64,000 nt of DNA, taken from positions 10,422,973 through 10,486,972 of the forward strand of contig OZ037770.1 of the NCBI GenBank assembly GCA_964035545.1, given 5' to 3'. Below the pieces are notes generated by a model. That model saw only the letters and a list, made by a program, of their open reading frames with translations, was not told the origin of the DNA and did not search any database. This DNA is from Bugula neritina (lineage: Eukaryota > Animalia > Bryozoa). The position numbers and the translations under genes are program-made. Numbering within the stretch: the stretch's first letter is position 1; each line of letters starts with the position of its first letter. Positions 1 through 64,000 of the stretch are shown here, piece by piece.

Positions 1-1971
1 AGGCTTACTGCTGAGACTATCAATTGGCATATAATAAATAAATTTGCTGCCTCTAATATGCACTCAGTTTATCATAATGGAAGGACAACTCTGATCTACC
101 TGAAAATGCCCATTTGATTTTATCAACAACAGCCATGGTAAACTTGTATAATTACACTGCTTGCAGTTTGTGTATATTTCTTATGCAAATGCAGGTATTG
201 CTCAGTTATTCAATGACTAGTATTTGGCAATGCACTGTTGCTATTCTTTCATATGACAGAGAAAGCGTTAGCCAATAGGAATCATTATTCCCACTGAGGA
301 GGGGCGCGACTACAATAAACAATCACAGTTGGCATTCTAGTATTAGTTAATGCACTGTTGCTTTACAATGGAATATAGAAAGCATTAGCCAATAGGAATC
401 ATCACATTCTGACTGACAAGGGGCGTGGTTTCAAGAAACAATAATTCAAGTTGGCATAAATTATTCCAAGTTTATTTACAGGTAAAATATTACTATATTT
501 TATAATGAATAGCTACACTATGAAGTAGAACCTAAAGTACAGTATTATACAGAATCATTAAAACATGATGAGTAGAATTATAACTTACTGACCTTACTGG
601 AAAATATACACAATAGTTGAGTATGTGAATTACTGGTTGTATAATAGTGAAGCAGCTATACATTGTAAGAAATTATAAAATATTTACTGTATAAATATAA
701 TGTCACATGTATTCATTATGTTACACGTGTTGCTAATGTATAATAATAATAACATTAGCCAATAGGAATCCTATAGCCTCAGTACCAGTGCAAATACTTG
801 TCAAAGAGAAGGCGACTCTTACTCTGATGTGTATATGTGGCCATTTTGTTGAGGAACTCAATTCTATCTTTATCATCTCAGCACTTACAATGTTATTAAG
901 ATTTACAGTAAAGTATATTTCATAATATTGCTATATATCTGTTGATGAATCTTTCACCAGCTAGGTCCTTTATGTTCTAGTACAATGTTTCTCTATAATA
1001 TGTCACTTTATATTACTCATTGTAATTCATATGCTAATGAAGTGAATATAAATAAAGTATAATTAATAAACTCTTACAATTCAGAGCATGTATATCACAT
1101 GACAATAGATCTTCTGTAGACCTGGGGGAGTAGACTGTTGCACCACCATTGATTAATTAAATATATAATTAATTATTTTCTCATCATGTTGCAGTATAGA
1201 CATTCTTCAGCTCTGATATTTCCTAACTATAGAGTTATACTTAATTATAGTTGATAGCCAACTGCACATGTTGTTAGTGCTACACACTGTAAAATAATTG
1301 CCCCCATTCGAACCACAAACCTCCAGCTTGCAAGCAGGCACACTAACCAATTACACTACAGGGGTTTCGGGATTCCAAGCAACACACACCAGATATATAT
1401 GTCTACAAGTACATGATTATAACCCCATAATCATTACAAAATATGGTTTCAAACTCTTTAATGTAGTGAGGAAAGATAAAATATTATAATGTGCTGATAT
1501 TTAATGTCATGGTGAGGTATAAAACATGTGATGAGATAAACATTAAGCTTTCCTATATGTTGTGTTTGTCATGTATTATAATACAATGGTTTGCTCTTTG
1601 ATGGTTGTAGTTGTATGATTATAGCAAGCCAGTCATTTGTTCCTGTCAATTATTGCAGTTTTTAGGACTTATACAGTTGCTAGAATTTTATAAGCATGTC
1701 TAGAAAAATGCGGTATTTATTTCGTTTCAAAATAATAAAATAATTTAGTATAAGAATTGTCTGAAGATGTGTCAAAACGCTGTATAGCCTTGCAGGCTAC
1801 GGCCTTTTGCATATAATAGTAACTTAGTATTATGGTAAGGAACAGGGATGCCCATAAGCGCAGGATGTAGAAGTAAGACAACCCCGTGCTTTCGTCGGAG
1901 AACTAGAAAACGTTAAAATGGGAGTCGCGCGCTTTCACTCATACATTAATATCCGGTTGTTATCTTCCGTT

Positions 1972-1982
1972 GGGGATTTCCC
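1972..1982 (+). promoter_or_regulatory. NF-kB/Rel-type site in the putative promoter of copy 1
   Basis: GGGGATTTCCC fits GGGRNYYYCC. It lies in the most CpG-dense host block of the unit (about 1850-2000), with TTCCG (Ets-like core) just upstream. Confidence 0.6.
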
Positions 1983-3731: not shown

Positions 3732-6700
3732 ATGGCAGAGGCTGCAGTGGAAAAAGTTGAGTGTGGATTCTGTTTACTTGAAGAAGGTTTAGAGAATCCC
3801 AAGTGTCTACCATGTGGTCATGTACACTGTTTACTGTGTCTTACTCGTAATGTTGATGTGAATGACATGATCAGGTGTCCCTGGTGTAGGTAAGTTAGTA
3901 GTTTTGTATAGGCAGAGCTGAGACATACTTTTGGTAAAGAGTTATGATTTACATCATATGTTTTACCTTATAAAAAATTCTTGCATTTCGTTGAAATATA
4001 GTTTCAATTATCACTGAGTAATTATGTGTCTTGTCACAGAGAAGTGTTTGATGTGAGAGTGGAGAATCTTCCCTCTGCTGATGTAGAGGACAACTCCGTA
4101 TCATGTGACGTCTGCACTAAGAAAGGGATAGAGAAAGTACCAGCAGTAACCTACTGTACTGTGTGTCGTAAACTATTTTGTAGAAAACATGAGGAGGTAA
4201 TTCCCTAGCATAACTCTTTTTAAATCAGTGAGTGACTGTTTATTTTTTTGTTGCTCAGCTTTTCAAAGTGATTGTCATAATTAGCTATAAATTTACTTCA
4301 GTGTGAAATTCTTTTATTTTCTTAAAGACATCCCCCACAATTTGACAATATTTTACATTTTTTTTGCTATGCATGGCTGAGTTTTTTTTAATATAATAAT
4401 TAATATTAATTGACCCTTGTTCATCACAGTCAACAAGTAGTCTTGCATTCTGTAAAACCTTTTTGGGGGTTTACTAAGCAGATAAAATACATTATTTTGT
4501 ATCTAACATCATGAGGATGTAATGCTCTGTAGTGATAGCCTCTAGACTGTGTTCTTAACCTCGCTATGTGCAGTTGAGTTATGTTTCTCAGTAAATATGT
4601 ATTCTGTTATATTCAGTCACATGATGACACCAGTGATGACCACCAGAAGATGACCATCTCTGACTACAGAATACAAGCCAAGAGATTGGAGAAACGAGTT
4701 TGTCCCAAACACACAGCATATCCCTACTCACTGGGATGTAAAATCTGCGTTCAGATATTTTGTTTGCAATGCACATCTTCAACCAACTTATGTGTTGGAG
4801 GTACAGAATTTTTATACTATTATTTCATGCTATAATTATCATTCAACTTTGGTTTGCTTAATGCAATTTTTCTGTTTTTTTTTTAGTCGGAGATAATGTG
4901 CTCTTTGCCTTTTGCATTTACTTGAATTCTTCAAGATTGATATCAAAATTTATAAAGTTAGCATAGCAATCTAATAGTAAAAACAGACCTGGCTGAAAAA
5001 ATAGTACGACACAGTTAAAAAATACCTTTGAATAATAATGATTGATGTTAGGATTTTTATGCTGTGATTTTATGCTATACTTATTTGGCAACTTTTGATC
5101 TTTTAGTAATTATGATAGTGCATTAGTTGGCTTTTTAAAAATAACTTGAATCTTTTAACAAGATGAGGTCAAAATGTATAAAGTTAATGTAGGAATTAAA
5201 TAGTAAAATCAGACCTGACTAAAAAATAGCATGACAGAGTTGGAAACATATGTTGGATTGACATTTTCTCTGATTGGAACTCAACCAGTCTTTATACAAG
5301 ATGTTGTACACCAATAATATGAAATACTTGTTCACAATGAGCCTGTATTGAATGAGTTCCAAACATAATTTGAAATATACTAATAAATTGCTTGTGCAGA
5401 TTGAAATGAATCTATATTGTATTACACAGATTCTGAGCATAAGCTGGTTAATTTGGATGACCTAATTAAAGACCTGATCAATATTGATGAATTGACTTCT
5501 GCAGAAGACAGGATGTCCGCCCACTTTAAACAATTATCTAAAACCTTATCTGATTTTGATACGGAGACTGGTGAATTGCTGAATATTCTTCATACACAGC
5601 GAGATGAGCATGTAAGATTATTATTGGTGTGATATATTTTAATATGCTTATGAATCTTTTATTAGATATTTATGCTTCAACGTGCTGGTAACTTCCGTTT
5701 TTCGGAATTGCCTTGCTTTGATTAACTAGGTCACAAATCTCGATATTTGAAGGTTTAAATAAAAGTAAAAAAGTAACAGTGCTATCTTTAACTTCCTGTA
5801 ACTTTTGTGTTGAGTTCTCAGTCTTATAATAATATATACTTAGCTAGTTGATATCATATTATCAAATACTTGTTTTAGTTGACTGAAGTGAGACTAAAGT
5901 ATGAGAAACTGGAGAAGGAATTCTCAGCTAGTAGAAAGAAGACTAAAGAGGAACTGAACAGATACATGGAGAGAGAAGTTGGAACTGTTTTGTCTCAACT
6001 GAGTAACAATAGAATGAAAATAGAAGCTCAACTTAGACAAAACCATCAGGTTTGTAGAATTCAATATTTTCCACTAAACTGATTTTCCATTTTACTGTTT
6101 TCTGTCTTGTAATAATTTCTACTTATGATTTACACTTTGCGGTGTGTAAGAGATTCTAGTAGGTAGGCCTGTTTCTTTTCTCAATTCCTTGGGACCACCA
6201 GCAATGGTGCTGTCAAATAAATTTGTATATGTAAGACGGTTTTGTATGTTTTATAGTGGTATAGGTTATATCATAGTGTATGTTATATAATAGTGTATGT
6301 CGGGGATGGGCAAATGTTTGTGAAATGAGGGGCCAGATCTCAAGATTTAAGGTGTCAGAAGGGCCAGGTTTGTTTGTTGTAAATTCAAGGTACACAATGC
6401 TGAACTATTAATTGCAAATATAAATTGCCTTTTCTTCAGTTTCCTGAGCTAAAAGTGTAAATGCCAGAATGTAGATGCAGAATATAAAAGATATGACAGT
6501 TTATTAATTTAACAAGTTGTATATAGTTTTCTAAGCAAGAAAGCAGCAAATAATATATTGGGTACACTTAGAGTACTGGAATTAGTGAGAAGTATAAAAA
6601 ACACTTTTAGTAGCCATATTAGCACTAATGTCACTGCTAGTTGTGGGTTCATGTATGGCTACTTGCAGATGTTCTTTGGTGAGCTAGCTGTGTTCTATTA

Positions 6701-6819
6701 CTATTTGTATATGGTTCATGCTAGAAAACATGCATTTGCATCTATAAGTATAACTAAATCACAGGCTATAATTGTTATTCATCTGGTGCTGTTTTAATTT
6801 ATTACAGGAAATAGACTGA
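3732..6819 (+). CDS. TRIM-family gene copy 1 (type A), truncated: RING, B-box, B-box, coiled coil only; exons 6-8 deleted
   Basis: Exons 3732-3889 (MAEAAVEKVECGFCLLEEGLENPKCLPCGHVHCLLCLTRNVDVNDMIRCPWCR, C3HC4 RING), 4040-4196, 4617-4800, 5430-5611, 5879-6049, all GT-AG and in frame. At about 6755-6765 intron 5 jumps to the 3' region of the unit. Splicing to the acceptor at 6807/6808 would add EID-stop (287 aa); that last join is inferred. It could be a pseudogene. Confidence 0.75.
6301..6372. mobile_element. Possible left end of a hAT/Charlie-type MITE in intron 5 (also about 61483-61555)
   Basis: C(A/G)GGGATGGGCAAA...GGGGCCAGAT resembles such termini; no right end or TSD found. Confidence 0.25.
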
Positions 6820-7689
6820 TGTGGAACAGGAAGTAGTTTTTACAGCAGACACATCTAGTTATTTGGTTTAGAAAGTGACAAGTGAAAAGGCAGCTGATTG
6901 GTCCATTCATCTGACCTAGTAACACTCTATGGTTACATTACCATGTCATTCATATGATACTTATTGTAACATTATTCTATATTATCTATCATACAGGACT
7001 GAGAACTAAGTAGTAGCAGTTATTGTATATTATCTTTCTTATAGGAGTGAAAACTCTGTAGTACACCATTTCTATTAATAATCAAAGGCAGTTTTATTAT
7101 ATATAGTATATATATTTCAAGACTAATAAATGGCTTAAACTAGGAAATGACCTTTTATATCTACAGGGCAACAAGGCATATTATATTGATGGTAGTGTTT
7201 ACAAATTACTCTTTACGTGGTAACAGTAAATCAACAAATTCCAAATCCCGCTAATGGTACATATATCATTTAACCAGCATATTGTAAATATTGGAAACTT
7301 ACAATGTAATATTGTCTTAGTAATATTATGCACATCAAAGTGTGGTACACTGGCTTATATACATTCAAGGGGCATGTTATATTCCCTAGCATGTTATCAG
7401 TGAACAAAATATTATAAACATTATGAAGGCTTACTGCTGAGACTACCAATTGGCATATAAGAAATAAATTTGCTGCCTCTAATATGCACTCAGTTTATCA
7501 TAATGGAAGGACAACTCTAATATGGCAGAAAATGCCCATTCCAGTTTCTCTAAACAACCACGGTAAACTTGTGTAATTACAGTGCTTGCAGTTTGTGTGT
7601 ATTTTTCTATATGCAAATTGCAAGTATTGCTCAGTTATTCAATGACTAGTATTTGTATTGTTGCTTGTCTTTCACATCTAATAGAGAAA

Positions 7690-7862
7690 GCATTAGCCAA
7701 TAGGAATCACCACATCATTCCTACTGAGGAGAGGCTTGACTACAATAAACAATTACAGTTGGCATTCTGTTACCAGGTAAAGCACTGTTGCTTTACAATT
7801 ATATATAGAAAGCATTAGCCAATAGGAATCATTACATTCTGACTGACAAGGGGCGTGGTTAC
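7690..7862. promoter_or_regulatory. Duplicated CCAAT-box plus GC-box module
   Basis: CATTAGCCAATAGGAATC followed by (G)GGGCGTG-type boxes, twice per unit. Also at about 265-430, 20950-21120 and 48155-48322. Confidence 0.35.
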
Positions 7863-10012: not shown

Positions 10013-10156
10013 AGGCTTGTAGGCTTGTAGGCTTGCAGGCTTGCAGGCTTGCAGGCTTGCAGGCTTGCAGGCTTGCAGGCTTGCAGGCTTGCAGGCTTGC
10101 AGGCTTGCAGGCTTGCAGGCTTGCAGGCTTGAAGGCTTGCAGGCTTGAAGGCTTGC
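10013..10156. repeat. Octamer minisatellite (AGGCTTGC)n, about 18 units
   Basis: Direct reading; it explains the spurious ACKPASLQ ORF. Confidence 0.95.
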
Positions 10157-10329: not shown

Positions 10330-10341
10330 GGGGATTTCCCC
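10330..10341 (+). promoter_or_regulatory. NF-kB/Rel-type site, copy 2
   Basis: GGGGATTTCCCC in the homologous block. Confidence 0.6.
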
Positions 10342-12413: not shown

Positions 12414-15400
12414 ATGGCAGAGGCTGCAGTGGAAAAAGTTGAGTGTGGATTCTGTTTACTTGAAGAAGGTTTAGAGAATCCCAAGTGTCTACCATGTGGT
12501 CATGTACACTGTTTACTATGTCTTACTCGTAATGTTGATGTGAATGACATGATCAGGTGTCCCTGGTGTAGGTAAGTTAGTTTTATATAGACAGAGCTAA
12601 GATATACTGTTGGTAAAGAGTTAATGATTTACATCATATTATGTTTTACCTTATAATGATTTATTGCATTTTGTTATATATAGTTTCAATTATTACAAAG
12701 TAATTACGTCTCATGTCACAGGGAAGTGTTTGATGTGAGAGTGGAGAATCTGCCATCTGCTGATGTAGAGGACAACTCCGTATCATGTGACGTCTGCACT
12801 AAGAAAGGGATAGAGAAAGTACCAGCAGTAACCTACTGTACTTTGTGTCGTAAACTATTCTGTAGAAAACATGAGGAGGTAATTCCCTCACATAACTCTT
12901 TTTAAATCAGTTTATGACTGTTTATTTTGGTTGTGATCAGCTTTTAAATGTGATTGTCACAATCAGCCAAAAGCTTTTATGTTTTTTATGGCATTCTCCA
13001 GAATAGGACAATCTTTTAAAAAAAATTCCGCTATTCATAGTTGAATTATATTTATCAGTAAACATATATTCTGTTATAATCAGTCACATGATGAAACCAG
13101 TGATGACCACCAGAAGATGACCATATCTGACTACAGAATACAAGCCAAGAGACTGGAGAAAAGAGTTTGTCCCAAACACACAGCATATACCTACTCACTG
13201 GGATGTAGAGTCTGTGTTCAGCTGTTCTGTGTGCAGTGTGTATCTCAGACTAACTTGTGTGTTGGAGGTAACTCTACTGTTCTCATATCCTTTCATATCA
13301 ATACTTTAGAGCTTTTTACTTGTGTTGTAGTATGTTTGAGTATTTAGTCTTAGTAGGTCACATTGTCTATCAACACTGTCTATTCATTCTTATTTCGGAA
13401 GCTTGAATACTGTTATTGTGTATTCATCACATAAAAGAAGGTAGAAGACAATACAGAAGTGATGCTTCAAACAAGTTGTGGGTTCATTAGTTCTGGTATT
13501 CTGGCTCCAATATTATTGTTACAGTAAAATCAAGAATATCCCATTAAACTCAAGATTTTAGAGTCTTCTTAGCTGAGTCTATTTAATTGCATATGTGTGC
13601 AGTTTTATGATTTGTTTCATTACTCGATATCCTTTCTGGCAAGCCAATCAATGAAGCGTATTGGAAATCTTGTGGCAGCAGTAGCCAATGAAATTTGAGC
13701 CATTCTTATGCGAAGGAATTTATTCACTCCTATAAAATTCAAATTGTGGCAGTGTTAGTTGGAGTTCATAAATCTCAAGAGTTCAAATAGGGTTCAATCA
13801 GGAAAGACTCGGTCTCATTACTCATAATATCTAAGTTAATCCACAACCTAAATACATGTTTAAATAGTGCTGGGTGGCATGGGAGTTTGTTAGTTCATTG
13901 AAGTATATAATGTCAAGGAAAGGCATTTTTATTAAAATATTAATAGTGCTGTTGTGCTCCTGTGCCCTGTTTGAATTAGTCGTTAGCCAGATTTAAGAAA
14001 AAACCTTCTATCAGGGGCTCTCCCACAGAGATGGCGACTATAAACTTTTAATAATGGTGATATTGTCATTGTTATTCAGGCAAATATTAGTATACATATG
14101 ATTGCATCACTGTGATGTAGATTCAGAACACAAGATGGTTAGTCTAGATGAACTTATCACACAGTTGACAAACATAGAAGAACTGATAACTACTGAAGAT
14201 AAGACATATCATCTCTTCAAACAGATATCTAAGGCTATATCTGACTTTGATACTGAGACTGAAGACTTGCTAAGTATTCTTCATACACAGAGAGATGAAC
14301 AGGTGAGATTCTGAAGAACACAGGCTACTCTCATGTGTTTTCATAGTTCTGTAAGATGTTATTGGTTGGTTAATGTCTAAGAAATAGTGATTAGTTTGTT
14401 TTACTGTAATTCTCATAGTATACAGCAAGACAAAGTGAAAGGGCCTAACTGATTGTTGCAAGTCTAGGAAGTGCTAACCAATATTCTAGCTAAATTTATT
14501 TAATTTAATTTAATTTATTTAATTTTATGTCTACTTTCTGATTTCTAACTTGGGTTGGGGATGTTGAATTTGCACCACAACTTTTTTATGGGCTTGTGAC
14601 TGGCATTTTGCTTATTATCTTCTTCACATCAGCCACTGTAATGCTTAAGTTCTCTTGTTTTTCTATATGCTCCAGCTTGCTACTTACTTTATTTAGCCAT
14701 TCTGCATTCGTATTATGCTTCGTTGGCTGGCCCCAGATGTTTTGCCAGAACGCTTTTGACTCTTCCTTGTCAGGTGCCTCTTTAGATGTACATTCAGTTC
14801 CTTGTAATTCTTGATAGAAGCGCTTTTCATTGTTTGTAAAACATCCTGTTCTGGTTATTATTATTATTATTATGAGTTATTTATTAACTTTTTTTTCAGG
14901 TTCAATTTACATTCGCTCAGATAATTTTAATTCTTGTAATAAGTACATGAAATATATCTAACAGACTTGTGTCAAGCCTTTGATTTTTTCAATAATCAAA
15001 TTCTCAAACTGCCTAATTAGTTTTTTGCCTGCGTCTTGATTTGATTTTGCTAGGAATTAACTTGACTTTTCTGGCTTGCAGTGACTTTAACTTTAGGAGG
15101 TTTTACATATAAGTTGTGTTTTAGTTGACTGAAGTGAGACTAATGTATGAGAAACTGGAGAAGGAATTCTTAGCTAGTAGAAAGAAGACTAAAGAGGAAC
15201 TGAACAGATACACGGAGAGAGAAGTTGGAACTGTTTTGTCTCAACTGAGTAACAGTAGAATGAAGATAGAAGCTCAACTTAAGCGAAACAACCAGGCATG
15301 TAGACTTCAGTTACCATAACAATATATAGTGGCTCTTTGAATTAATAACAATAAATACTCGTAGTAATGAAAACTAGAAATTATTGTTGATAATATGTAC

Positions 15401-24157: not shown

Positions 24158-24168
24158 GGGGATTTCCC
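24158..24168 (+). promoter_or_regulatory. NF-kB/Rel-type site, copy 3
   Basis: GGGGATTTCCC in the homologous block. Confidence 0.6.
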
Positions 24169-36695: not shown

Positions 36696-36779
36696 GAAAC
36701 TAATATGGAGATTTATAGAAACTCTTAGGCTGGCTACATAATGGGCTAGTAATTTAATTATATAAATACCTATCTAGAT

Positions 36780-46658: not shown

Positions 46659-46933
46659 ACAGGTATTATGTATTTAGTAATAAGAGTTTCATCCCATTAC
46701 CTGATGGAGGAAAAGTTTTGCATTTAAATGTTAACAGAGGCTAAAACTACTTTCAATCAATGGAATGTGTCTATTTATATACTGTGACATCACACAGCAA
46801 AAAGAGTTCCATCTTTACTCTGCTTGTATTTCTATTTAGCCAAAAAAATTGTTAAACTTTGGAATAGTGCCTTTTTATTTTACATTCTGTTGATATTGAT
46901 AAATTGTTGTGTTAGTTATTTACATAGTACTGA

Positions 46934-47169
46934 TGGTGTCCAGTAATAATGGTGCAGGTAAAACTGGCACAGGTGGCAAAGTAGGTAAAAAAGGCACATT
47001 TTCAATATTAGGGTTTTGGGTTGAGGATTTGGAATATATGGGGTTTAGGGATGAGGTTAAAGGGTTGGGGTTTGGGAAAAGATAACACAAGTTTGCCATT
47101 TTCACCTCCTTCCCATTTGTGCCATTACTACTTGTGCCATTACTACTTGTGCCATCATTACCTAAAGTC
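46934..47169. mobile_element. Same palindromic insertion downstream of copy 4
   Basis: Homologous to 30181-30417, flanked by AGTACTGA/AGTGCTGA. Confidence 0.6.
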
Positions 47170-48798
47170 AGTGCTGACTAACATACTAAATCTATGACAA
47201 TTTTCTTGTATGTTTGTCTCCTATATTACTAGCCGTGATATGTCATTAGCTACTAATAGCCGTGACACAATATTATATGGGTTAGAATATTATTTATTCA
47301 CCTTAAGTTGCTTTCTCAATACTCAGAATATTTATTACAGGAAAATAGACTGATGTGGAACAGGAAGTAGTTTCTGCAGCAGACACATCTAGTTATTTGG
47401 TTTAGAAAGTGAAAAGGCAGCTGATTGGTCCATTCATCTGACCTAGTAACACTCTATGGTTACATTACCATGTCATTCATATGATACTTATTGTAACATT
47501 ATTCTATATTATCTATCATACAGGACTGAGAACTAAGTAGTAGCAGTTATTTTATATTATCTTTCTTATAGGAGTGAAAACTCTGTAGTACATGCTTTCT
47601 ATTGACAATCAAAGGCAGTTTTATTATATATAGTATATATCTTTCAAGACTAATAAATGGCTTAAACTAGGAAATGACCTTTTATATCTACAGGGCAACA
47701 AGGCATATATTGATGGTAGTGATTACAAATTACTCTCTATGTAGTAACAGTAGATCAAAAAATTCCAAATCTCACTGATGTTATATATCATTTAACCAGC
47801 ATATTGTAAATATTGGAAACTTACGATGTAATATTATCTTAGTAATATTATGTACATCAAAGTGTGGTACACTGACTTATATACATTCAAGGGGCATGTT
47901 ATATTCCCTAGCATGTTATCAGTAAACAAAACATTATAAATGTTATGAAGGCTTACTGCTGAGACTACCAATTGTCATATAATAAATAAATTTGCTACCT
48001 CTAATATGCACTCAGTTTATCATAATGGAAGGACAACTCTAATCTACCAGAAAATGCCCATTTGAGTCTCTCTAAAGTCTAAACAGCCATGGTATAAACT
48101 TGTGTAATTACACTGCTTGCAGTTTGTGTATATTTTTTATGCAAATTAAAGTATTGCCAATTGAAATTAACCCTTCATTCCTACTGAAGAGGGGCGTGAC
48201 TACAGTAAACAATTACAGTTGGCATTCTAGTAGTAGGTAATCCACTGTTGCTTTACAATGATATATATAGAAAACATTAGCCAATAGGAATCATCACATT
48301 CTGACTGACAAGGGGCGCGGTTACAAGAAACAATAATTCAAGTTGGCATAAATTATTCAAAATTTATTTACAGGCTATAGGTAAAATATTACTATTTCAT
48401 AATGAATAGATACACTACAAAGTAGAACCTAAAGTACAGCATTGTACAGAATCATTAAAACATGATGAGTAGAATTATAACTTACTGACCTTACTGGAAA
48501 ATACACACAATAGTTGAGTATGTGAATTACTGGTTGTATAATAGTGAAGCAGCTATACATTATAAGAAATTATAAAATATTTACTGTATAAATATAATGT
48601 CACATGTATGTATTATGTAACACATGTGTTTAATGTATAACAAATACATAAATTAGAGAGACAGAAAAATATAAATATAATGTCACATATATTCATTATG
48701 TAACATATTATGTGTTTAATGTATAATAAATACATAAATTAGAAAAAACAGAAAAATATACACAATATGAAATGCAGTTTAGAAGCCAGTGGACAGTG

Positions 48799-50787: not shown

Positions 50788-50798
50788 GGGGATTTCCC
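50788..50798 (+). promoter_or_regulatory. NF-kB/Rel-type site, copy 5
   Basis: GGGGATTTCCC retained although the flanking block is rearranged. Confidence 0.6.
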
Positions 50799-52119: not shown

Positions 52120-55100
52120 GGTGGTGGATGGTGGAACCAAGAGCTGTACCAGTTTACACTACGGACCCCAGCATCCAAGGACTGATGGCAATGATGTACT
52201 GTAGAGAAGTTCCCATCAGTCAAGACTTCATACTAACCTCCAAGCGGTCACCACTGGTAACTGGGTGTAGATACACCCAGGCTAATAGTATGAGGATCTA
52301 TGGGTTGATCACCCAGACAACAATCCATCCAGAAACGTGACACTCTGAGAGGGCGAATTACTCGGCCAGTCACTGCGACTACTGAACTGCTGTGCTCGTC
52401 CTGGACACTCCTTGCCAGCACAGCGTACTTCTTTAGTGGAGAGGGGTGCTTAAGCAACTGACAAAACCCTAAGTATCCTTAAACTTCTTGTCAGCATAAC
52501 CCGATTGAATCATGAAAAGAAAAATGAACACGAAATCATACTGGCAGGACGTCGCCCAGGATAAAAAGGTCCAAATTTCTAAACTCAACCTTGCATCATG
52601 GAACATACGAACAATGCTAGACCGGGAGAACACAGAAAGACCTGAGAGAAGGAGTGCAATCATTTCATCTGAACTACAGAAGTATGGCATCGACATTGCA
52701 GCACTGAGTGAAATCAGATTCAAAGATACAGGTAAAATTCGTGAAGAGTCAGGCTACACCATTTACTGGAGTGGCAAAACTGCATCTGAGCGCAGTGAGT
52801 CAGGCGTGGCCCTTGCTATCAGGAACGAACTTGTTTCGAGACTAATCGAAGAGCCAAAGGCTATAAGCGACAGACTGATGTCACTCAGGGTTCCTCTGTC
52901 TGATGAGCGATGGTGCACTGTGATAGCTGTCTATGCTCCCACGATGACAAACAGCCAAGAAAACATCAACAGATTCTATGACCAACTGAATCAGGCTCTA
53001 AGATCAGTCCCAGCAGCTGATAAGATCTTACTCATGGGGGATTTCAATGCTAGAGTTGGACAAGATCACTCAACCTGGCCCGGTGTGATAGGCAAGTATG
53101 GCTGCGGAAACCTGAACTCCAATGGTGAACTTCTGATCTCAGTCTGTAGTGAACATCAACTGTGCATTACCAACACCTTCTTCAAGCATAAACCAGCTCA
53201 CAAGTTCTCTTGGATGCACCCGAGAAGCAAGAACTGGCATCTCATCGACTTTGTTATCACACGACAACGTGATCTACCAGACATTCTAGACACAAGGGCG
53301 ATGAGAGGGGCGAATTGCAGTACTGACCACATCATGATCAGGTCAAAAGCTAAGCTCCGAGTGAGGAGAAAAATGAAGAAAGGGAGAACACCTTGCCAGA
53401 AGCTGGACGTTTCTCGACTTAAGAATGAGGAAGTAAGACAAGAACTGGAAAAGTCCCTTGCTGGGAAACTGAACTCTGCTCCAGAGGGCGTGGAGAGTAA
53501 GTGGAGAGCATTCAAAGAGATAGTTTATGCAGAGTCAAAAGTGCACCTCGGCACTGTCAGCAGGAAACATGAGGACTGGTTTGACGAGAATAATGATGAG
53601 CTTCAAGAACTCATCCAGAAGAGAAACAAGGCCAGAGCAGACATGTTAACCAGGAATACTCGCTCGAACAAGTCAAAGCTTAGAATGGCTGGCAGAAAAC
53701 TCACAGGAAGATGCAGGGAGCTCAAGAACGACTGGTGGTTGGCAAAAGCTGCTGAACTGCAACGGTTTGCTGACACCAACGACATGAAAGGCTTTTACCA
53801 AAGCATGAAAACTGTTTGGCGTCCAGGAGTGAGTCATCCTGACCAGCTCCTGGCCAGTGACAGCTCAACACTCCTGACAGAAAAACAAGATCTTCTAGCG
53901 AGATGGACAGAGCATTTCAGCAAGCTACTAAACGAGACTCCAGATATTGATGACAACATCATTGAGAACCTGAGACAAGCTCCCATTCAGGACTGGATGA
54001 ACGATTGCCCAGATATTGAAGAGATCATCAAGGCAACTTCGATGCTAAGTGAAGGGAAATCACCTGGCTCTGATGGCATTCACCCGGAGGTTATCAAAAG
54101 GGGAGGGCCCAAACTAATAAGTACTCTCCATGAGATAATAAAGGAGGCATGGAAAACTGCTGTAGTCCCTCAAGATTGGAAAGATGCCCAACTTATAACC
54201 ATCTTCAAAAAAGGTGATCGGAAGCTGTGCGGTAACTACAGAGGTATCTCCCTGCTCTCAATTCCCGGTAAAGTTTTTGCTCGTGTCCTTCTGAATAGAC
54301 TGACATCATATGCAGAAAACTTCCTACCCGAAACTCAGTGTGGATTCCGTAGTGGAAGGGGAACAGCAGATATGATATTTGCACTGAAGCAGATACAGGA
54401 AAAATGCATCGAGCAAAATATGCCCCTGTACATGGTCTTCATTGACTTCACCAAAGCGTTCGATACTGTTGATCGGGCGACCCTGTGGAAGATCTTACAG
54501 AAACTCGGTTTTCCTAGTCACTTCACCAATCTTATCAGCGCTCTCCATATTGGCATGAAGGCCTCAGTCAAGCTGAAAGGGGAGTTATCTGAGTCGTTCC
54601 AAGTCAACAATGGTGTGAAACAAGGATGTGTGTTGGCTCCAACGCTATTCTCTATTTTCTTATCGGCTGTTCTACAGCACGCATTTGAAAACTGTGATAA
54701 AGGCGTCTGGATTCAAAGTAGACCTGGAGCTGATCTGTTCAATGTGAACCAATACAAGTCAACAACAAGAACACAAAAAGTATTGGTTAGAGAACTCATG
54801 TTTGCTGACGACACTGCCTTCGTTGCACACAGCCATGGCGATGCACAGGAATTAGTCAACAGATTCGCCAGAGCTTCCAAAGCTTTTGGTCTGAAGATCA
54901 ATATCAAGAAAACGGAAACGCTCTACCAACCGGCACCTGGAGCCCATGACAGTGGTGACAGTATCTGCATAGATAATGAAGACCTTGCCAACGTCAATAG
55001 GTTTAAATATCTTGGGTCTACAGTGATGTGCAACAACAAGATGGATGAAGAGATTCATACAAGGATGTCCAATGCTTCAATCTCATTCGGCAGACTAAAG

Positions 55101-55613
55101 ACCAAAGTGTGGTACAATAAGGATCTGTCATTCAAGACCAAGTGTACAGTGTACAGAGCCATTGTCCTGTCCTCTCTGCTCTATGGAGCGGAGGCCTGGC
55201 CTGTATACAGGATAGCCGCTCACAAATTCAACACCTATATGATGAGACATCTACACCAGATCTTGAACGTGAAGTGGTGGGATTTCATCTCGAATGAGGA
55301 GACTCTAGCACAGGCAAATCTACCCAGCATGTATGAACTACTCATTCACAAAAACCTGAGATGGGCTGGTCATGTGCATCGAATGGATAACTCTAGATTA
55401 CCTAAGCAAATTCTCTATTCACAACTGAAAGAAGGCACCCGTGGTGTTGGCAGGCCGCGACTGAGATTCAAAGATACCGTTAAACGCAATCTAAAAGACC
55501 TGAAGATCCCTATTGGTAGCTGGCAATCTCTCAGCAAAGACAGATGTAAATGGAGGACCATGATTCACCGGAAGTCATCTTCGGACACGAAGGACAGCTA
55601 ATGATGATGATGA
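52120..55613 (+). mobile_element. Apparently full-length RTE-clade LINE
   Basis: Single APE+RT ORF, 392-bp 5' UTR, (TGA)n tail straight after the stop, TSD TATATAAGT (52111-52119 and 55614-55622); empty site in the other four units. Confidence 0.93.
52512..55601 (+). CDS. APE endonuclease plus reverse transcriptase polyprotein (1029 aa)
   Basis: SWNIRT, ALSE, GDFNA, IDF, TDH endonuclease motifs; KSPGSDG, NYRGISLL, QCGFR, DFTKAFD, GVKQGCVLAP, FADD, YLG RT motifs; RWAGHV and GRPRLRF C-terminus. Confidence 0.96.
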   Translation: MKRKMNTKSYWQDVAQDKKVQISKLNLASWNIRTMLDRENTERPERRSAIISSELQKYGIDIAALSEIRFKDTGKIREESGYTIYWSGKTASERSESGVALAIRNELVSRLIEEPKAISDRLMSLRVPLSDERWCTVIAVYAPTMTNSQENINRFYDQLNQALRSVPAADKILLMGDFNARVGQDHSTWPGVIGKYGCGNLNSNGELLISVCSEHQLCITNTFFKHKPAHKFSWMHPRSKNWHLIDFVITRQRDLPDILDTRAMRGANCSTDHIMIRSKAKLRVRRKMKKGRTPCQKLDVSRLKNEEVRQELEKSLAGKLNSAPEGVESKWRAFKEIVYAESKVHLGTVSRKHEDWFDENNDELQELIQKRNKARADMLTRNTRSNKSKLRMAGRKLTGRCRELKNDWWLAKAAELQRFADTNDMKGFYQSMKTVWRPGVSHPDQLLASDSSTLLTEKQDLLARWTEHFSKLLNETPDIDDNIIENLRQAPIQDWMNDCPDIEEIIKATSMLSEGKSPGSDGIHPEVIKRGGPKLISTLHEIIKEAWKTAVVPQDWKDAQLITIFKKGDRKLCGNYRGISLLSIPGKVFARVLLNRLTSYAENFLPETQCGFRSGRGTADMIFALKQIQEKCIEQNMPLYMVFIDFTKAFDTVDRATLWKILQKLGFPSHFTNLISALHIGMKASVKLKGELSESFQVNNGVKQGCVLAPTLFSIFLSAVLQHAFENCDKGVWIQSRPGADLFNVNQYKSTTRTQKVLVRELMFADDTAFVAHSHGDAQELVNRFARASKAFGLKINIKKTETLYQPAPGAHDSGDSICIDNEDLANVNRFKYLGSTVMCNNKMDEEIHTRMSNASISFGRLKTKVWYNKDLSFKTKCTVYRAIVLSSLLYGAEAWPVYRIAAHKFNTYMMRHLHQILNVKWWDFISNEETLAQANLPSMYELLIHKNLRWAGHVHRMDNSRLPKQILYSQLKEGTRGVGRPRLRFKDTVKRNLKDLKIPIGSWQSLSKDRCKWRTMIHRKSSSDTKDS

Positions 55614-56047
55614 TATATAAGTTTTCAAACTTATTGTGAATATTTGTAATTACATGACATAGTACAATATGTGTACAGCATCCTGTTGGTTAATCAAATC
55701 TTGGAAATCTTTTCGATTCAATAGTTGAAAATTTTAAGCACTTCAAGTCGAATGATTTTATCAAATTAGTTATTATTAATTATCCACTGTTTTTACTTTT
55801 AATCTGCTTCTTTTGTTTTACTTTTTTATATTTGAGGGACGTGCAGTTTCAATTCATGGGGTTTCACTGTAGCTCAGTAATTTAGTGCTGGTTCTTAATA
55901 ATACGCATATTAAGATGTATTTTAAATGCTTCTAGAGATTTGTTTTGTTTGTTTTATTTTTCCTTTACAATTCTTTGTTGAAACATATTTCTAAGAAAAA
56001 GTGTTTTTATGTAAAGCTTACATTTCCATTTTATAGGGTAAATCTAA

Positions 56048-59000
56048 ATGGCGGAGGCCGCAGTGGAAAAAGTTGTGTGTGGATTCTGTTTACTTGAAGA
56101 AGGTTTAGAGAATCCCAAGTGTTTACCATGTGGTCATGTACACTGTTTACTATGTCTTACTCGTAATGTTGATGTGAATGACATGATCAGGTGTCCCTGG
56201 TGTAGGTAAGTCAGTTCTGTATAGGCAAAGCTAAGACATACTGTTGGTAAATAGTTCATGATTTTCATCATATGTTTTATCTTATACTAAATTATTGCGT
56301 TCCATTACATTATATGTTTTACCTTATAATAATTTATTGCATTCCGTTATATATAGTTTCAATTATTACTAAGTAATTATGTGTCTCGTCACAGAGAAGT
56401 GTTTGATGTGAGAGTGGAGAATCTTCCATCTGCTGATGTAGAGGACAACTCCGTATCATGTGACGTCTGCACTAAGAAAGGGATAGAGAAAGTACCAGCA
56501 GTCATATTCTGCACTGTGTGTCGTAAACTCTTCTGCAGAAAACATGATGAGGTATTTGATTGATTATATAACTATTTACTGTTTGGGTAATGCACCATAA
56601 ACCATACTCGTAAGCCTATTTTAGTGATTTTGTGGGTTTATTAGAAATAGATTAAGCAGTCTGCATGCCAGTACTATTCTTTGCTGAATAAAAGTCTTCT
56701 TGGATGATTCAATATAATAGTCTTTATTTCTTATTAGATGTTTCCTCAGAAAGCTCCAGTGTAACACTGACTTAGCACTGGAAATTACCACCACTTCGGT
56801 TGTCCGAAACTCGGCCGAGACTCGGAATTACGTTGGCCGAAGTCGGAAGGTTCTGTCCGTGATCGAACCGACCCTTCCGAAGTCGCACCTTCGGGCTCCG
56901 ATCTCGGTCGAGTTTCGGCTCACATAACTTGTCAAATGTTTAATTATAAAAAAAGGTGGCGGAGGAATACAACTCTAATTACACTGGTACAAAAACATCT
57001 CCGCAATTCTATTACACTATTCCATTTTTTTTTTCGTTGAGTTATATTTTTTAGTAAATATATATTTTGTTATACTTAGCTACATGATGAAACCAGTGAT
57101 GAACACCAGAAGATGACCATATCTGACTACAGGATACAAGCCAAGAGATTGGAGAAGAGAGTTTGTCCCAAACACACAGCATATCCCTACTCACTGGGAT
57201 GTAAAGTCTGTGTTCGGCTGTTCTGTGTGCAGTGTGTATCTCCGAGCAACTTATGTGTTGGAGGTACGAAAGTTTTATGCTATTATTTTCTGTTATTGTT
57301 ATCTGGTATTTTGTAATTTTCTCAATGCAATTTTTAGTTTTTAGTAGTAGGTGATAGTGCATTAGTGGGCTTTTAAAAAGTAATTTGAATCTTTGAACAA
57401 GTTGATGTCAAAATGTATAAATTTTATGTTAAGATCAAATAGTAAAAACAGACCTGACTAAGAAAATAGCATGACAGAGTTGGAAAAATATGTCCGATTA
57501 ATAAATATTGATCTTAATTAGTAACTTATTGTACCAACTACTAGTATTTTTCCTTTATAGCAATTCTTTACATTTTCTCTGATTGGAGCTCAACTAATCT
57601 TGATTCAAGATCTTTACACCAATAATAGAGGGGTTTCAGACATCCCTCCAGAGGAATTTGTATTTTAAAGTTGCCTCCCCCTACAGGGATTGGGGGCAGT
57701 CTCAATGATATATAGAAGGCCCATAAAATAAGTAGAGATGTATGGTTTGAGTGAAGACTACTACTAGTATAAGTTTCATTTTTTCTGAGATTAATATTTT
57801 GGCATAGGTACACATATGAGCAGTTTCAGAAATTTTTTAAAAAATTTTGTTAATGATAAATGGCACAAAAAGAAAACTTCAAAGCATATTTGTGGTTTTG
57901 GTTATTGAGCAAATCTGAAGCTGGCAGCTGTCATTATTATTTGCTTTGCTGACTGTAACCAGTCTGGTTAGAGCTGCTAACCTTTCAACTCTTAGAACAA
58001 TAATAACATGCTCGTACACTATATAGCTGCACTAGTGGGCTCTGTCTTACTAAACTCCAAATGCTCCAAATTATGGGTTGGAACACATGCCTGTACGTTT
58101 ATGAAGGCACTGGCTCATTTGTATTAACATGTTCACGTACTTACACACCTATACTATGAAAATAACTAAGCCACCCTACTATCTAATATTTCTATATATC
58201 AAAAAAATTATTATAAATATAAAGATATGTATTAAAATAGATAGATTAAATTTGTAATTTCAAACAACATCTTATCTAAAAATGCCAAACACTGTATAAC
58301 TATATATATTTTTTAAAAGCATTTGTTTACATGACATGCCTGCAAGTCAATGAAAATATTTAAAGAACAGTAAAAGGAAGCATATAAATTTCAGAATAGT
58401 TTCTTCTTTTCTGAGATAAATATTTTGGAAATGTCCCACAATTCAACATTTAAATTAAGTCTGTAAAAGAATTTTTCACAGTGTATTTTCAATGAATAAT
58501 TATTCTTGCAAGCTGGTTTGTGTTTGTTCTGGCATGCCATTTTACAGTGGTCTAGTTAACTAGGTCAAAGTTCATTGAGGTGGAATTGTTTTATTAACCT
58601 CCTTGTGTCGATAAAATACTATCATTGGATTTAGAGCTTCTCTAAGCAACTTCGCAGTCTGATTAAATATCTGCGATACCTGCCTATTAGACAATCCAAA
58701 CCTAAAAAATAATATACTAAATCTTTGTATTACATGTATGGATGAAAAATAATGCAACAAATTGGCTAAAGCATGTTCAAGTAATGTAAAAAACTCGAAA
58801 TATAAATGAGTCCAACTAGAGCTAGTCAAGTGTGTAGTGTTTTTGGCCGATTTATATGTGTTGTTTAATCAGCTTATTATGTAGTGATGTAATCCTATAT
58901 AATGTAATTTAAGTTAGACAGCTAAAGTTGGACAGTTCTCATCGTGCACTTTCTTGAATAAGCAGTTATGTAATATAGAGAGACAGCTACTCAACAGAGA

Positions 59001-62000
59001 GCTTCAAGCAAACAAAATTCTTGCAACGAGGTTGATTGAATACAAAACAGCTGCTGTTATTCTTATAGCAGCATGCATTGTATAAGAGATAGCCTGATGG
59101 TTCACATAGTTTACATACAGTGACATACCACTGAAAATTATTAGAAACCACAGAAAAGATATAAAGGAGAGAATGCTGGCACAAAGGAAGTATAGCAATG
59201 CGGTCAAATATATGGCTGAAATCTGACCTAGAGATAAATAAGTACAAAATGTACATAATATAGCTAAATCAGTAAAGCCAAATGATTTGATATAAAAAGT
59301 ATTATCTGGGAATTTAGTGAAACTTAGTAGCATTATTTAGAACTCCACCTTTGAGCAAGACCCGTATGGAGTAAAGCCAATCTTAATTTTATTAGTGTCA
59401 TAAGAATGCAGTCATTATGACATAGTTCGTTCTTTCTATACTTTACAGCTGGTACTAAATGTACATTTCAACTTTTTTTGAAAACAAAATAAGTTGCTTT
59501 GGCTGAAAAGTGCTTTTTTTTGATGATTTTTTTTCTGCAATGCAGCAGTATACAATTTACAATGCTCCAAAAACATTTCTTTATTAGGAATGTTGGTATA
59601 CAAACAGCTTGCAAGAATAGTTATTTATTGAAAATACACTGTGAAATTTTTTTTACAGACTTAATTTAAATGTTGAATGGTGGGACATTTCCAAAATATT
59701 CATCTCAGAAAAGAAGAAACTATTCTGAAATTTATATGCTTCTTTTTACTGTTCTCTAAATATTTTCATTGACTTGCAGGCATGCCATGTAAACAAATGC
59801 TTTTAAAAAATATATATAGTTATACAGTGTTTGGCATTTTTAGATAAGATGTTGTTTGAAATTACAAATTTAATCTATCTATTTTAATACATATCTTTAT
59901 ATTTATAATAATTTTTTTGATATATAGAAATATTAGATAGTAGGGTGGCTTAGTTATTTTCATAGTATAGGTGTGTAAGTACGTGAACATGTTAATACAA
60001 ATGAGCCAGTGCCTTCATAAACGTACAGGCATGTGTTCCAACCCATAATTTGGAGCATTTGGAGTTCAGTAAGAGTACAGAGCCCACTAGTGCAGCTATA
60101 TAGTGTACGAGCATGTTATTATTGTTCTAAGAGTTGAAAGGTTAGCAGCTCTAACCAGACTGGTTACAGTCAGCAAAGCAAATAATAATGACAGCTGCCA
60201 GCTTCAGATTTGCTCAATAACCAAAACCACAAATATGCTTTGAAGTTTTCTTTTTGTGCCATTTATCATTAACAAATTTTTTTAAAAAAATTCTGAAACT
60301 GCTCATATGTGTACCTATGCCAAAATAATAATCTCAGAAAAAATGAAACTTATACTAGTAGTAGTCTTCACTCAAACCATACATCTCTACTTATTTTATG
60401 GGCCTTCTATATATCATGGAGACTGCCCCCAATACCTGTAGGGGGAGACAACTTTAAAATACAAATTCCTCTGGAGGGATGTCTGAAACCCCTCTATTGG
60501 AAATATGTATTCACAATGAACCTGTAAGGCACGAGGTCTGAACATATTTTGAGTTACTAATAAATTGCTTGTGCAGATTGAAATGAATCTATATTGTATT
60601 ACACAGATTCTGAGCATAAGCTGGTTAATTTGGATGACCTAATTAAAGACCTGATCAATATTGATAAATTGACTTCTGCAGAAGACAAGATGTCCGCCCA
60701 CTTCAAACAATTATCTAAATCTTTATCTGATTTTGATACTGAGACTGGCAAATTGCTGAATATTCTTCATACACAGAGAGATAAACATGTAAGATTAATA
60801 TTATTATCCAGTGGTATATTAATTTTAATATAATTATTGTAATTTGTATTTGAACTTTATGCTTCAGCATGCTTGTATTTTCATATCTTTAGATTTAATT
60901 TGCTTTGATTACTAAGCCATAAATCTTGATATTTGATAGTTTAAATAAAAGTAGAAAGCAAACAATGCTTTCTATAACTTCCTGTAATTTTTGTGTTGAA
61001 TTCTTTGTCTATTAATTTCATGTGTGCTAAGCTAGTTGATATCGTATTATTGCTTTAGTTGACTGAAGTGAGACTAAAGTATGAGAAACTGGAGAAGGAA
61101 TTCTTAGCTAGTAGAAAGAAGACTAAAGAGGAACTGAACAGATACATGGAGAGAGAAGTTGAAACTGTTTTGTCTCAACTGAGTAACAGTAGAATGAAGA
61201 TAGAAGCTCAACTTAGACAAAACCATCAGGTTTGTAACTAATCCAATATTTTCCACTAAACTGATTTTCCACTTTACTGTTTTCTGTCTTGTAATAATTT
61301 CTACTTATGATTTACACTTTGCGGTGTGTAAGAGATTCTGGTAGGTAGGCCTGTTTCTTTTCTCAATTCCTTGGGACCACCAGCAATTGTGCTGTCAAAT
61401 AAATTTGTATATGTAATACGGTTTTGTATGTTTTATAGTGGTATAGGTTATAGCATAGTGTATGTTATATAATAGTGTATGTCAGGGATGGGCAAATGTT
61501 TGTGAAATGAGGGGCCAGATCTCAATATTTAAGGTGCCAGAAAGGGCAGGTTTGTTTGTTTTAAATTCAAGGTACGCAATTCTGAACTATTAAATGCAGA
61601 TATGAATTGCCATTTCTCCAGTTTCCTGAGCTGAAAGTATAAATGGCAGAATGTAGATGCAGAATACAAAAGATATGACAGTTTATTAATTTACCAATTT
61701 GTATATAGTTTACTAAGCAAGAAAGTAGCAAATAATATATTTGGTACACTTATAGTACTATAATTAGTGAGGAGTGTGAAAAACACTTTTAGTAGCCATA
61801 ATAGCACTAATTTCACTGCTAGTAATGGGTTCATGTGTGGCTACTTGAAGCAAATCTTGCAGATGCTCATTGGTGAGCTAGCTGTGTTCTATTACTATTT
61901 TTATATGGCTCATGCTAGAAAACATGCATTTGCATTTATAAGTATAACTGAATATGCCCAGTACTCTTAGTCCCAGTTTAGCTAGTGTAGGGTACTTCTC

Positions 62001-64000
62001 ACTGGTTACTGGTGAAGTGTAGAAGCTAACTGTTGTTGCAGCAACTGGTAAATTGAGTTGCAACAGCAGCAACATCACATAACCCAAGTTGTAATGCTGC
62101 TATACTTATGCTCTCTGAAGGGTGATTTTTAGTTTCAGCAACTATATTATTTAATGTAAAATATCAGCAGTGACAGAAAGATGTCAAGTATATATTGGTT
62201 ATTGTGTATCTGTCTAGCAACTGTTCATATGTGGTCACATGTTACAGGTGGATCTGGTTGAAGGATTTGCAGAGATTAAAGAGAGAATACAGAGACTGAT
62301 ATCTGTTGAGATACCTAAACTAGAGTTGTGTGATGTCATGTCTCTAGAGGTCAAAGGTTAGTATACTAGACTAGAGCTGTTTGATGTCATGTCTCTAAAG
62401 GTCAAAGGTTAGTATACCAAACTAGAACTGTGTGATGACATGTCTATAAAAGTTAAAAGTTATAACTCTACAACCAAGCAAGTCAATCTTCCCTGACAAG
62501 ATTTCAATTCCTAATCTGTTGTATTGGTATTTCAATGCAGGTATAAGATAGATACAAACCTCATATACATAGACCAGAATATCGCCACCTTAGCTATTAT
62601 AGTAAATTATGGAAATAGCTAGGAGGAAGTATTACATTAAATATGTATATAATGATAAGAATAGTTCCTACAGTCTCCCTTACTAACTCTCACATAACTT
62701 GTACTTTGTAGAAGAGAAGAGAGAAATAGAGGCAGAACTGGTTCCTGCAGCAGACATGATTATTAGTTTAGATCAAGGAGTGACAACTCTCACTCTTCCT
62801 AAATCTCTCAAACTCCTACAGTCTGTTGATGTTTCTAATGGCTGTAGGTCTGCTTGTAAATATGAGGGCAACACTTATGTAGGGCTGGAAAATGATGCAG
62901 GGATAGACAGAATAGATGAGAGTTTCAGTGTTTCTAAGTCTTTTGTTTCTGTTACTAAGAATGTAAATGGAGTAGCAGCTTGTACTAACCAGTTGTATGC
63001 TTTAGTTTTTGTCAGTGATCGCAATCCTTCTTGGGTGGTGAATGTGTATGATCTTACTGGGAAACAGGTGACCAGCTGGTCGCATCATGATAATAGTGGT
63101 GGTGTAAACAAACTTGCTATTGTTGATGACCAGGTTGTAGTTCCTGATAGACACAGTAAAAGACTTACAATCTACTCTTTTACTGGGGAGGTAATTAAAC
63201 ATGTCCCCTGCCCTCTACTCAGTAATAGTCGTACAGCAATATGTGCAGCAGACAGACATTGTGTAGTAGTTTCTGACTCTGGTTCCTCTCAAGTATTTAA
63301 ATTAGACTTGACAACAGAGAAAGTCATCTGGACATGCAAGGATGTATATAAACCACGAGGTGTGACCTGCTATAGAAGTAAATATATTCTTGTGAGTAAC
63401 TACAGCAGTAAAACCACCATCTGGATACTGGATGTGGAGACAGGTTAGTGATTCCAGTATTGTAATGTATGTGTGCAAAATAGAATATATTTAACATGGA
63501 AACTTTGCTTCATATACGCTACATAATACTGTATGATAATACATTAAATTGTATACTCAAACCACAATCAGTGGATGGGCTGTTGGTAAGCCATTCAATA
63601 ATAAAATTCACAGCTCTACTGTATGTAATGGCGTTTATAATATAAATATATAGCTACATTTACCTTCCATTTAGGTTGTACACTATTTACACATTTGCTG
63701 TACAGTGCACTTTACAAATTGATAAGTATATTGTTAGGAAGTTGCTATTATAGGCCCATTGACTATATTTATTGAAACACATGACTAAAATATATTAAAA
63801 CAATATGCAGTCACAAAGGTTTCTCCCCAGTGTCAGGATACATATTATATTCAAGCTATATTGAACTTGTTATATTGTAGGTAGACAGTTATCTATGCTA
63901 GAAGATACAACTGTTAGGAGTGAGAGTAGTGTACTTGATCTCCATGTGTATGAAGACATGCTGATTGTACCCAGATGTCAAGAGAAGAAAGTTCTATTCT
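56048..64000 (+). CDS. TRIM-family gene copy 5 (type A); last exon runs off the window
   Basis: Exons 56048-56205, 56395-56551, 57080-57263, 60607-60788, 61059-61229, 62248-62356, 62712-63443, 63881 to window end. In frame, GT-AG. Confidence 0.88.
56737..57000. mobile_element. Small GC-rich foldback/MITE-like insertion in intron 2 of copy 5
   Basis: Outer arms AGATGTTT...CCAGTGTAA and TTACACTGG...AAACATCT; inner arms CCGAAACTCGGCCGAGA and TCTCGGTCGAGTTTCGG; absent in copy 3. Confidence 0.55.
57628..60494. mobile_element. Non-autonomous foldback DNA transposon, 2.87 kb, with TIRs of about 0.9 kb
   Basis: 57628 to about 58520 is the reverse complement of about 59600-60494; termini GAGGGG...CCCCTC flanked by TA; empty site in copy 1 (about 5318); no transposase ORF. 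Confidence 0.9.

Follow-up and report, generated by a model that had tools for sequence, protein, structure and literature searches.

A 64,000-nucleotide stretch of the genome of the bryozoan Bugula neritina (the window, positions 10422973-10486972 of contig C6) carries part of a tandem array of genes that join a RING finger, two B-boxes, and a presumed coiled coil to a predicted six-bladed propeller of the NHL type. The propeller is under diversifying selection, unequal exchange redistributes exons and blades between the copies, and NF-kB-type (kB) motifs are enriched upstream of the genes. Read by analogy with known TRIM systems, the family is probably a lineage-specific, germline-encoded repertoire of intracellular sensor-ubiquitin-ligases with NF-kB-linked expression, a judgement held with somewhat more confidence than doubt. 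C1 and C3-C9 designate contigs of the host genome, which is 216 Mb in size and AT-rich; C6 is 16 Mb long.

Exon mapping places five paralogues on the + strand of the window, with start codons at 3732, 12414, 26036, 40595, and 56048. Flanking DNA extends the array to 16 tandem RING/B-box/B-box/coiled-coil genes over 220 kb (C6:10.30-10.52 Mb), five of which fall in the window. Fourteen are full-length and unbroken, one lacks the propeller (copy 1 of the window), and one is a terminal three-exon stub. Internal stops or frameshifts occur in none of the 14 complete genes, and copies 2-5 give stop-free translations of 605-608 amino acids. A preliminary description, made from the letters of the window, had counted at least five paralogues, one of them propeller-less, and had proposed following the array beyond the window; both counts agree with the exon map. 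The gene plan, for which splicing is inferred from homology and GT/AG ends, comprises eight coding exons followed by one untranslated exon at the 3′ end, with the coding exons in the order RING, B-box1, B-box2, three presumed coiled-coil exons, a linker/propeller exon, and the last coding exon. The propeller exon (714-753 nt) encodes the linker and most of five blades, and the last coding exon completes the propeller. At least 153 matches to the propeller exon are present genome-wide, and sister arrays, known from match coordinates only, are located at C6:11.4-11.6 Mb, C6:9.1-9.2 Mb, and C3:30.8 Mb as well as on C4, C5, C7, and C8.

Database searches were run exon by exon or with natural database proteins as query. 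Exon 1 is matched by six RING models of Pfam (best E 1.9e-4, short of the curated cut-off). In every copy it keeps all eight zinc ligands of a C3HC4 RING with the spacing C-x2-C-x13-C-x-H-x2-C-x2-C-x12-C-x2-C, together with the Arg that follows the last RING Cys; the RING begins at residue 11. Exon 2 matches ANCHR-like_BBOX (E 3.7e-4) and exon 3 matches zf-B_box (E 5e-5, 23.8 bits against a cut-off of 24.1), and the Cys/His spacing is visible in both. Exons 4-6 contribute about 150 charged residues at the position expected for the coiled coil of a TRIM/RBCC (RING/B-box/coiled-coil) protein. Judged by their sequence, the RING and B-boxes have the features that characterize TRIM/RBCC proteins, and E3 ubiquitin-ligase activity is predicted from the RING ligands and the Arg kept in all copies.

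At the C-terminus, the Pfam searches gave no SPRY match, and the propeller stands in its place. The model of a window propeller exon takes on five blades with a predicted local distance difference test score (pLDDT) of 87.5, and the model of a complete propeller from the bryozoan Watersipora subatra contains 24 strands in six blades, in which an N-terminal strand presumably closes the ring. In an exhaustive structural search of 48,161 chains, the top five matches are all TRIM-NHL domains for the five-blade exon (Z 21.0-21.7) as well as for the complete propeller (Z 27.6-29.1, root-mean-square deviation 2.0-3.1), and the leading matches of both models are the NHL domains of TRIM2, Mei-P26, Brat, Lin41, and TRIM71. 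On these models, the propeller adopts the six-bladed NHL-type fold, in line with the “NHL-like” propeller of the preliminary description. Identity to solved NHL domains is 12-18%, the NHL repeat signature PF01436 is matched by none of the window copies and by 6 of 33 relatives (best E 5.8e-7), and a PDB sequence search returned a weak match to a YVTN propeller and nothing else. Since the linker measures only 30 residues, a filamin domain has no room. The top face of the propeller is formed by the B-C and D-A loops (definition of PMC4015489). By residue count, the net charge of its loops ranges from -6 to +4 over 14 paralogues with no conserved basic patch, and the conserved basic RNA-binding surface of the Brat/TRIM71 type is therefore not kept. 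The label of an RNA-binding TRIM-NHL orthologue was not applied to a family whose top face is hypervariable and of variable charge; it is filed as an NHL-type TRIM.

Divergence by domain was measured pairwise among 14 array paralogues. Mean amino acid identity amounts to 96% in the RING, 90.5% in B-box1, 85% in B-box2, and 78% in the propeller, so that the near-invariant RING/B-box end of the preliminary description holds for the RING but not for B-box2. The ratio of nonsynonymous to synonymous divergence (dN/dS) is 0.21 in the RING, 0.19 and 0.37 in the B-boxes, 0.24-0.48 in the coiled-coil exons, and 0.81 in the propeller, while synonymous divergence has its minimum in the RING exon (0.08) and its maximum in exon 4 (0.50). 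Purifying selection acts on the N-terminal half, which appears to be homogenised in part.

Within the propeller, strands were assigned from the structure model and blade 6 by homology. Positions with four or more different residues number 32 of 84 in the top loops, 3 of 39 in the bottom loops, and 5 of 128 in the strands (32/84 versus 8/167 for all other positions, P=5e-11; top versus bottom loops, P=5e-4). Comparison of codon models M2a and M1a yields a doubled log-likelihood difference (2dL) of 185 with omega2=5.7 at 13% of codons, and positive selection is significant in each of three propeller sub-segments analyzed with separate trees. Because recombination inflates the M2a test, 34 null simulations free of positive selection were run on mosaic trees, in which 2dL reached 32 at most. 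High-posterior selected sites fall into top loops in 15 of 21 cases. The D-A loops are the sole loop class clearly above 1 (pairwise dN/dS 1.97, confidence interval (CI) 1.12-3.73), and the bottom loops are constrained (0.53). These results support diversifying selection concentrated on the putative ligand face. The pattern differs from uniform neutral divergence, which the preliminary description had named as the outcome that would speak against its proposal; the estimates by domain that it had suggested give low values for the N-terminal half and positively selected top-face sites for the propeller. For the RING/B-box/coiled-coil half, a 2dL of 13.8 lies within the recombination-null range of the propeller, and positive selection is not claimed there.

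Recombination among copies is confirmed at the level of sequence: the nearest paralogue switches from exon to exon and from blade to blade, and compatibility between neighbouring sites exceeds that under permutation (p=0.0005 in an incompatibility permutation test). The patchwork relatedness noticed at the outset is thereby borne out, as is a coiled coil of two types. The types are restricted to coding exon 4, where nucleotide identity is ~71-75% between and 93-99% within them; type a is found in window copies 2 and 4, type b in copies 1, 3, and 5, and the two roughly alternate along the array. This distribution suggests that some exons have been homogenised and that the two exon-4 types have long been retained.

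Candidate kB motifs of the sequence GGGGATTTCCC start at 1972, 10330, 24158, 32651, and 50788 of the window. Each is a consensus match on the + strand within a duplicated block, located 1.76 kb (1972-1982), 2.08 kb (10330-10340), 1.88 kb (24158-24168), 7.94 kb (32651-32661), and 5.26 kb (50788-50798) before the ATG of copies 1 to 5, respectively. The longer distances in copies 4 and 5 are due to the insertion of a long terminal repeat (LTR) retroelement and a long interspersed nuclear element (LINE), respectively. The window holds 17 matches to the kB consensus against 0.87 expected from shuffles. All five sites lie inside one duplicated block of ~250 bp (81-98% identical) and therefore trace back to one ancestral event. 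The block is unique to this array, where it occurs in 11 copies, intact in 10 of 16 genes and degenerate in one. The preliminary description had placed a perfect kB motif upstream of each gene, which is true of the five window genes but not of the full array, nor are the five sites independent of one another. Conservation of the motif within the array was rejected as functional evidence, as the flanks in the block are as conserved as the motif core.

Stronger evidence than the single block comes from at least five other arrays, in which strict kB motifs (11-12-mers) that differ in sequence and orientation lie 610-1783 bp upstream of 9 of ~75 family RING exons (two on C3, one each on C4, C5, and C7, two at C6:9.1 Mb, and two at C6:11.4-11.5 Mb). 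For the 2 kb before about 75 genes, 0.19 motifs are expected (P about 2e-6 with five independent events counted), where the patterns searched are part of the consensus and the expectation is taken from genome-average, not promoter, density. A reversed control motif occurs 0 times upstream of the same RING exons. The kB site is likely, though not certain, to be functional.

Several further observations concern regulatory sequence. GGGRAWTTCCC is present 566 times genome-wide against 66 for the reversed control (8.6-fold), an excess that may stem from numerous functional Rel sites or from a motif-carrying repeat; regularly oriented matches at C8:0.3-1.7 Mb look repeat-like. Rel-homology genes occur at two or more loci, among them C9:4.686 Mb and C1:16.853 Mb, for which NF-kB and NFAT are not distinguished, and a strict kB motif at C1:16846332, 6.4 kb upstream of the Rel-homology exon at C1:16852769, fits NF-kB autoregulation. 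Repeated CCAAT-box-like words that adjoin GC-box-like words at 260-430, 755-770, 7690-7860, and 20955-21000, some 1.2-2.6 kb ahead of the kB block in copies 1-3, may form a second regulatory block. Directly upstream of the kB block, an 8-bp tandem repeat is expanded in copies 2 and 4 (10013-10156 and 32374-32482) and marks a promoter haplotype common to both.

The full-length relatives that carry a species name are all RefSeq proteins of Watersipora subatra, annotated automatically as “uncharacterized” or “tripartite motif-containing protein 2-like” (XP_067944866.1, XP_067940943.1). They belong to the same family, are about 600 amino acids long, and have eight coding exons with matching boundaries, the layout of three genes being the same as in the array, but their clades have expanded separately. 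A literature search found no functional description of them. Variable positions are held in common: the top positions selected in the array are also variable in seven Watersipora paralogues (entropy 1.97 versus 0.41, P=3e-10) and in 21 metagenome propellers, and the Watersipora variability supports the selection pattern as an independent check from the sequences of a second genus. The most closely related propellers (up to 87% identity) are encoded on JGI contigs labelled AY690838, an accession tied to the B. neritina mitochondrial genome (PMC2678162), and a transposon shared with a metagenome contig is 77-84% identical to host-genome copies. A public run (SRR4125604) contains an intron-free 469-residue homologue with coiled coil and propeller and with neither RING nor B-boxes, a mirror image of copy 1. 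Indirect signs of expression are given by the intact frames, the Watersipora RefSeq models, and this intron-free homologous open reading frame. Nearest by language-model features (score 0.93, with a recognition value below threshold) are mollusc clusters of NHL-containing hypothetical proteins in the ESM Atlas, which may hint at similar NHL expansions in other lophotrochozoans.

The five window copies, all on the + strand, differ in detail. Copy 1 (3732-7051, from homology and GT/AG ends) has exons at 3732-3889 (RING), 4040-4196 (B-box1), 4617-4800 (B-box2), 5430-5611 (coiled coil, type b), and 5879-6049 and a 3′-terminal exon from 6808, in which the predicted 287-residue RING/B-box/coiled-coil product ends; exons 6-8 were lost in a deletion that begins in intron 5 and ends in intron 8, with its junction at about 6759-6766. 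Copy 2 (12414-20060, 605 residues) consists of 12414-12571, 12722-12878, 13084-13267, 14121-14302 (type a), 15125-15295 (GC donor), 15577-15685, 17866-18588 (blades 1-5), 19027-19160 (end of blade 5, blade 6, and stop), and an untranslated exon from 19817. Copy 3 (26036-30829, 608 residues) is built from 26036-26193, 26334-26490, 26618-26801, 27213-27394 (type b), 27611-27781, 28166-28274, 28589-29320, and 29775-29908, with the untranslated exon from about 30590. Copy 4 (40595-47578, 606 residues) follows with 40595-40752, 40892-41048, 41235-41418, 42267-42448 (type a), 43205-43375 (GC donor), 43658-43766, 45375-46100, and 46525-46658 and an untranslated exon from about 47342. Copy 5 (56048-64000, 608 residues) comprises 56048-56205, 56395-56551, 57080-57263, 60607-60788 (type b), 61059-61229, 62248-62356, 62712-63443, and 63881 onward, its last coding exon ending 14 bases beyond the window.

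The non-canonical GC donor ends exon 5 in six of seven type-a array genes (e.g., at 15296 and 43376), whereas type-b genes use GT. Up to 7 tandem copies of a 51-bp unit, which covers the last part of exon 6 together with the splice donor, are present at 15644-16015, 43728-43836, and 62315-62462 and provide spare splice donors. Read-through from exon 6 into the intron meets an immediate stop, and intron retention would yield a propeller-less protein. The gene immediately preceding the window has lost the stop codon in its last coding exon (C6:10421417-10421550), and its first blade and B-box1 exon are the most divergent of the array.

Mobile elements are inserted in several copies. The LTR retroelement between the kB block and the ATG of copy 4 (33032-38877, minus strand) has identical 475-bp LTRs (33032-33506 and 38403-38877), a 4-bp target duplication, a 71-bp tandem repeat, and a primer-binding site that resembles the 3′ end of tRNA-Ala. 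It contains one 435-residue open reading frame (36780-38087, minus) with no Pfam match; no pol was seen between 33032 and 38877, and the young element is probably non-autonomous. The LINE between the kB block and the ATG of copy 5 (52121-55614, + strand), a non-LTR retrotransposon with a short trinucleotide tail and a target duplication, sits in the presumed 5′ intron and encodes an intact endonuclease and reverse transcriptase (52512-55601, 1029 residues). Three copies of a ~780-bp miniature inverted-repeat transposable element (MITE) are located at 16018-16798 and 16963-17742 (head to head in copy 2) and at 43844-44624, and intron 3 of copy 5 harbors a 2.9-kb foldback element (57624-60498) with inverted arms of ~900 bp that are 97.7% identical.

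In the favoured reading of a sensor-ubiquitin-ligase repertoire, the dimerization, clustering, and ubiquitination steps are taken from the biology of TRIM5, TRIM21, and finTRIM proteins. The coiled coil would form antiparallel dimers carrying two propellers, and the propellers would bind a repetitive non-self target such as a viral capsid or protein, an intracellular microbe, or a parasite effector. Target binding would then cluster the B-boxes and RINGs, so that the target is ubiquitinated or signalling chains are built, and NF-kB/Rel would raise expression of the array upon infection. More speculatively, the near-identical coiled coils within each of the two types may allow mixed dimers, and the propeller-less copy 1 could serve as a decoy or damper in the manner of TRIM5 isoforms that lack B30.2. 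A broader form of the proposal, in which cheilostomes possess more than 150 NF-kB-inducible cytosolic TRIM receptors with NHL in the role that B30.2 plays in vertebrate antiviral TRIMs, diversification by selection and blade-level gene conversion, mixed dimers within the two coiled-coil types, and propeller-less decoys, is put forward tentatively, as the less probable outcome.

Several results weigh against the sensor reading. Averaged over the whole top face, the tree-free pairwise dN/dS is 1.35 (CI 0.92-2.00), and it is 0.88 for the B-C loops alone; the list of selected sites comes from a naive empirical Bayes procedure in our own implementation with fixed relative branch lengths. The kB block is absent within 9 kb of five of the 16 array genes examined, most family genes outside the array have no strict kB motif of the patterns searched, and three Watersipora loci lack a strict kB pattern in a similar position near the ATG. 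Moreover, positive selection shows a changing partner, whose identity as a pathogen it does not imply. The partner could instead be an endogenous selfish element, with propellers that recognise proteins or RNAs of transposons or retroelements and silence or degrade them, chiefly in the germ line. Diversifying selection is equally expected here, young retroelements and MITEs abound in the array, and the closest folds are RNA-binding NHL domains (PMC4015489), those of Brat and TRIM71 binding RNA on the top face. Such insertions are, however, expected in any recombining array, the top face lacks a conserved basic patch and varies widely in charge, and the kB motifs better suit infection-inducible expression, which leaves this alternative unlikely.

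Less likely still is a role in colonial life, in which variable adaptors control fusion and rejection or tolerate and police resident bacteria. The family has expanded in two colonial cheilostomes, and another Bugula sample contains no propeller more than 88% identical to a local copy, although near-identical alleles were possibly hidden by the search. Known allorecognition proteins are surface proteins, unlike the array products, in which the RING starts close to the N-terminus and inspection by eye reveals neither a signal nor a membrane segment; in addition, similar NHL clusters seem to be commonest in non-colonial molluscs. About equally improbable is a general expansion of substrate adaptors that serve protein-quality control or stress responses and are linked to NF-kB without being driven by pathogens. 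E3 adaptors often expand through birth and death, and kB sites also drive stress genes, but host substrates change slowly, and this alternative does not readily account for an omega near 6 on the same face in two genera. Neutral birth and death, with unconstrained loops, an omega produced by recombination, and a passenger kB motif, or else mis-assembled haplotypes, is largely refuted and has a very small residual probability. Recombination is indeed present and inflates the test, and the kB block is one duplicated sequence with flanks conserved like the motif. Against this, the observed 2dL far exceeds the null, the bottom loops are constrained, the frames are intact, the same sites vary in Watersipora, and kB motifs recur in the non-homologous upstream DNA of other arrays. 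Haplotype mis-assembly, a concern of the preliminary description, is not supported, since introns differ throughout, the LTR, LINE, and MITE insertions are copy-specific, and the array lies on a single contig; paralogous non-coding blocks are mostly 75-95% identical, and no two propellers are alike.

A literature search in which few subscription journals were covered retrieved no description of this family or of such diversified immune receptors in bryozoans, and the comparison is with two known groups. The TRIM-NHL class C-VII (TRIM2, TRIM3, TRIM32, TRIM71/LIN-41, Brat, Mei-P26, and NHL-2) shares the domain order and the six-bladed fold. It has few known members, three in flies, four in C. 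elegans, and five in mammals (PMC4015489), and a basic RNA-binding top face, whereas the bryozoan family has over 150 copies, a hypervariable top face of variable charge, no filamin domain, and only the low identity to solved NHL domains given above. If the family senses pathogens, a fold familiar from conserved RNA regulation is capable of becoming a variable receptor. Testable material consists of about 15-20 defined residues on one face, a defined motif ahead of the genes, a copy naturally devoid of a propeller, and another genus to compare with. The vertebrate class IV TRIMs, namely finTRIM (ftr), btr, trim35/hltr, and primate TRIM5/TRIM22, resemble the array in the RING/B-box/coiled-coil scaffold, multigene expansion, recombination, and positive selection in loops of the C-terminal ligand-binding domain (PMC3137616). 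Their variable domain is B30.2 (PRY-SPRY), while the array has an NHL-type propeller and a lophotrochozoan host, and because it lacks B30.2 it is not a member of the finTRIM/TRIM5 type. The preliminary description had proposed that the array follows the same logic as TRIM5 and finTRIM; this stands for the TRIM architecture, the NHL-type propeller, and selection on the ligand face, and the immune role is suggested by analogy. If that analogy holds, the TRIM5/finTRIM strategy, in which a constant ligase carries a rapidly evolving recognition face, has evolved a second time on the basis of another domain.

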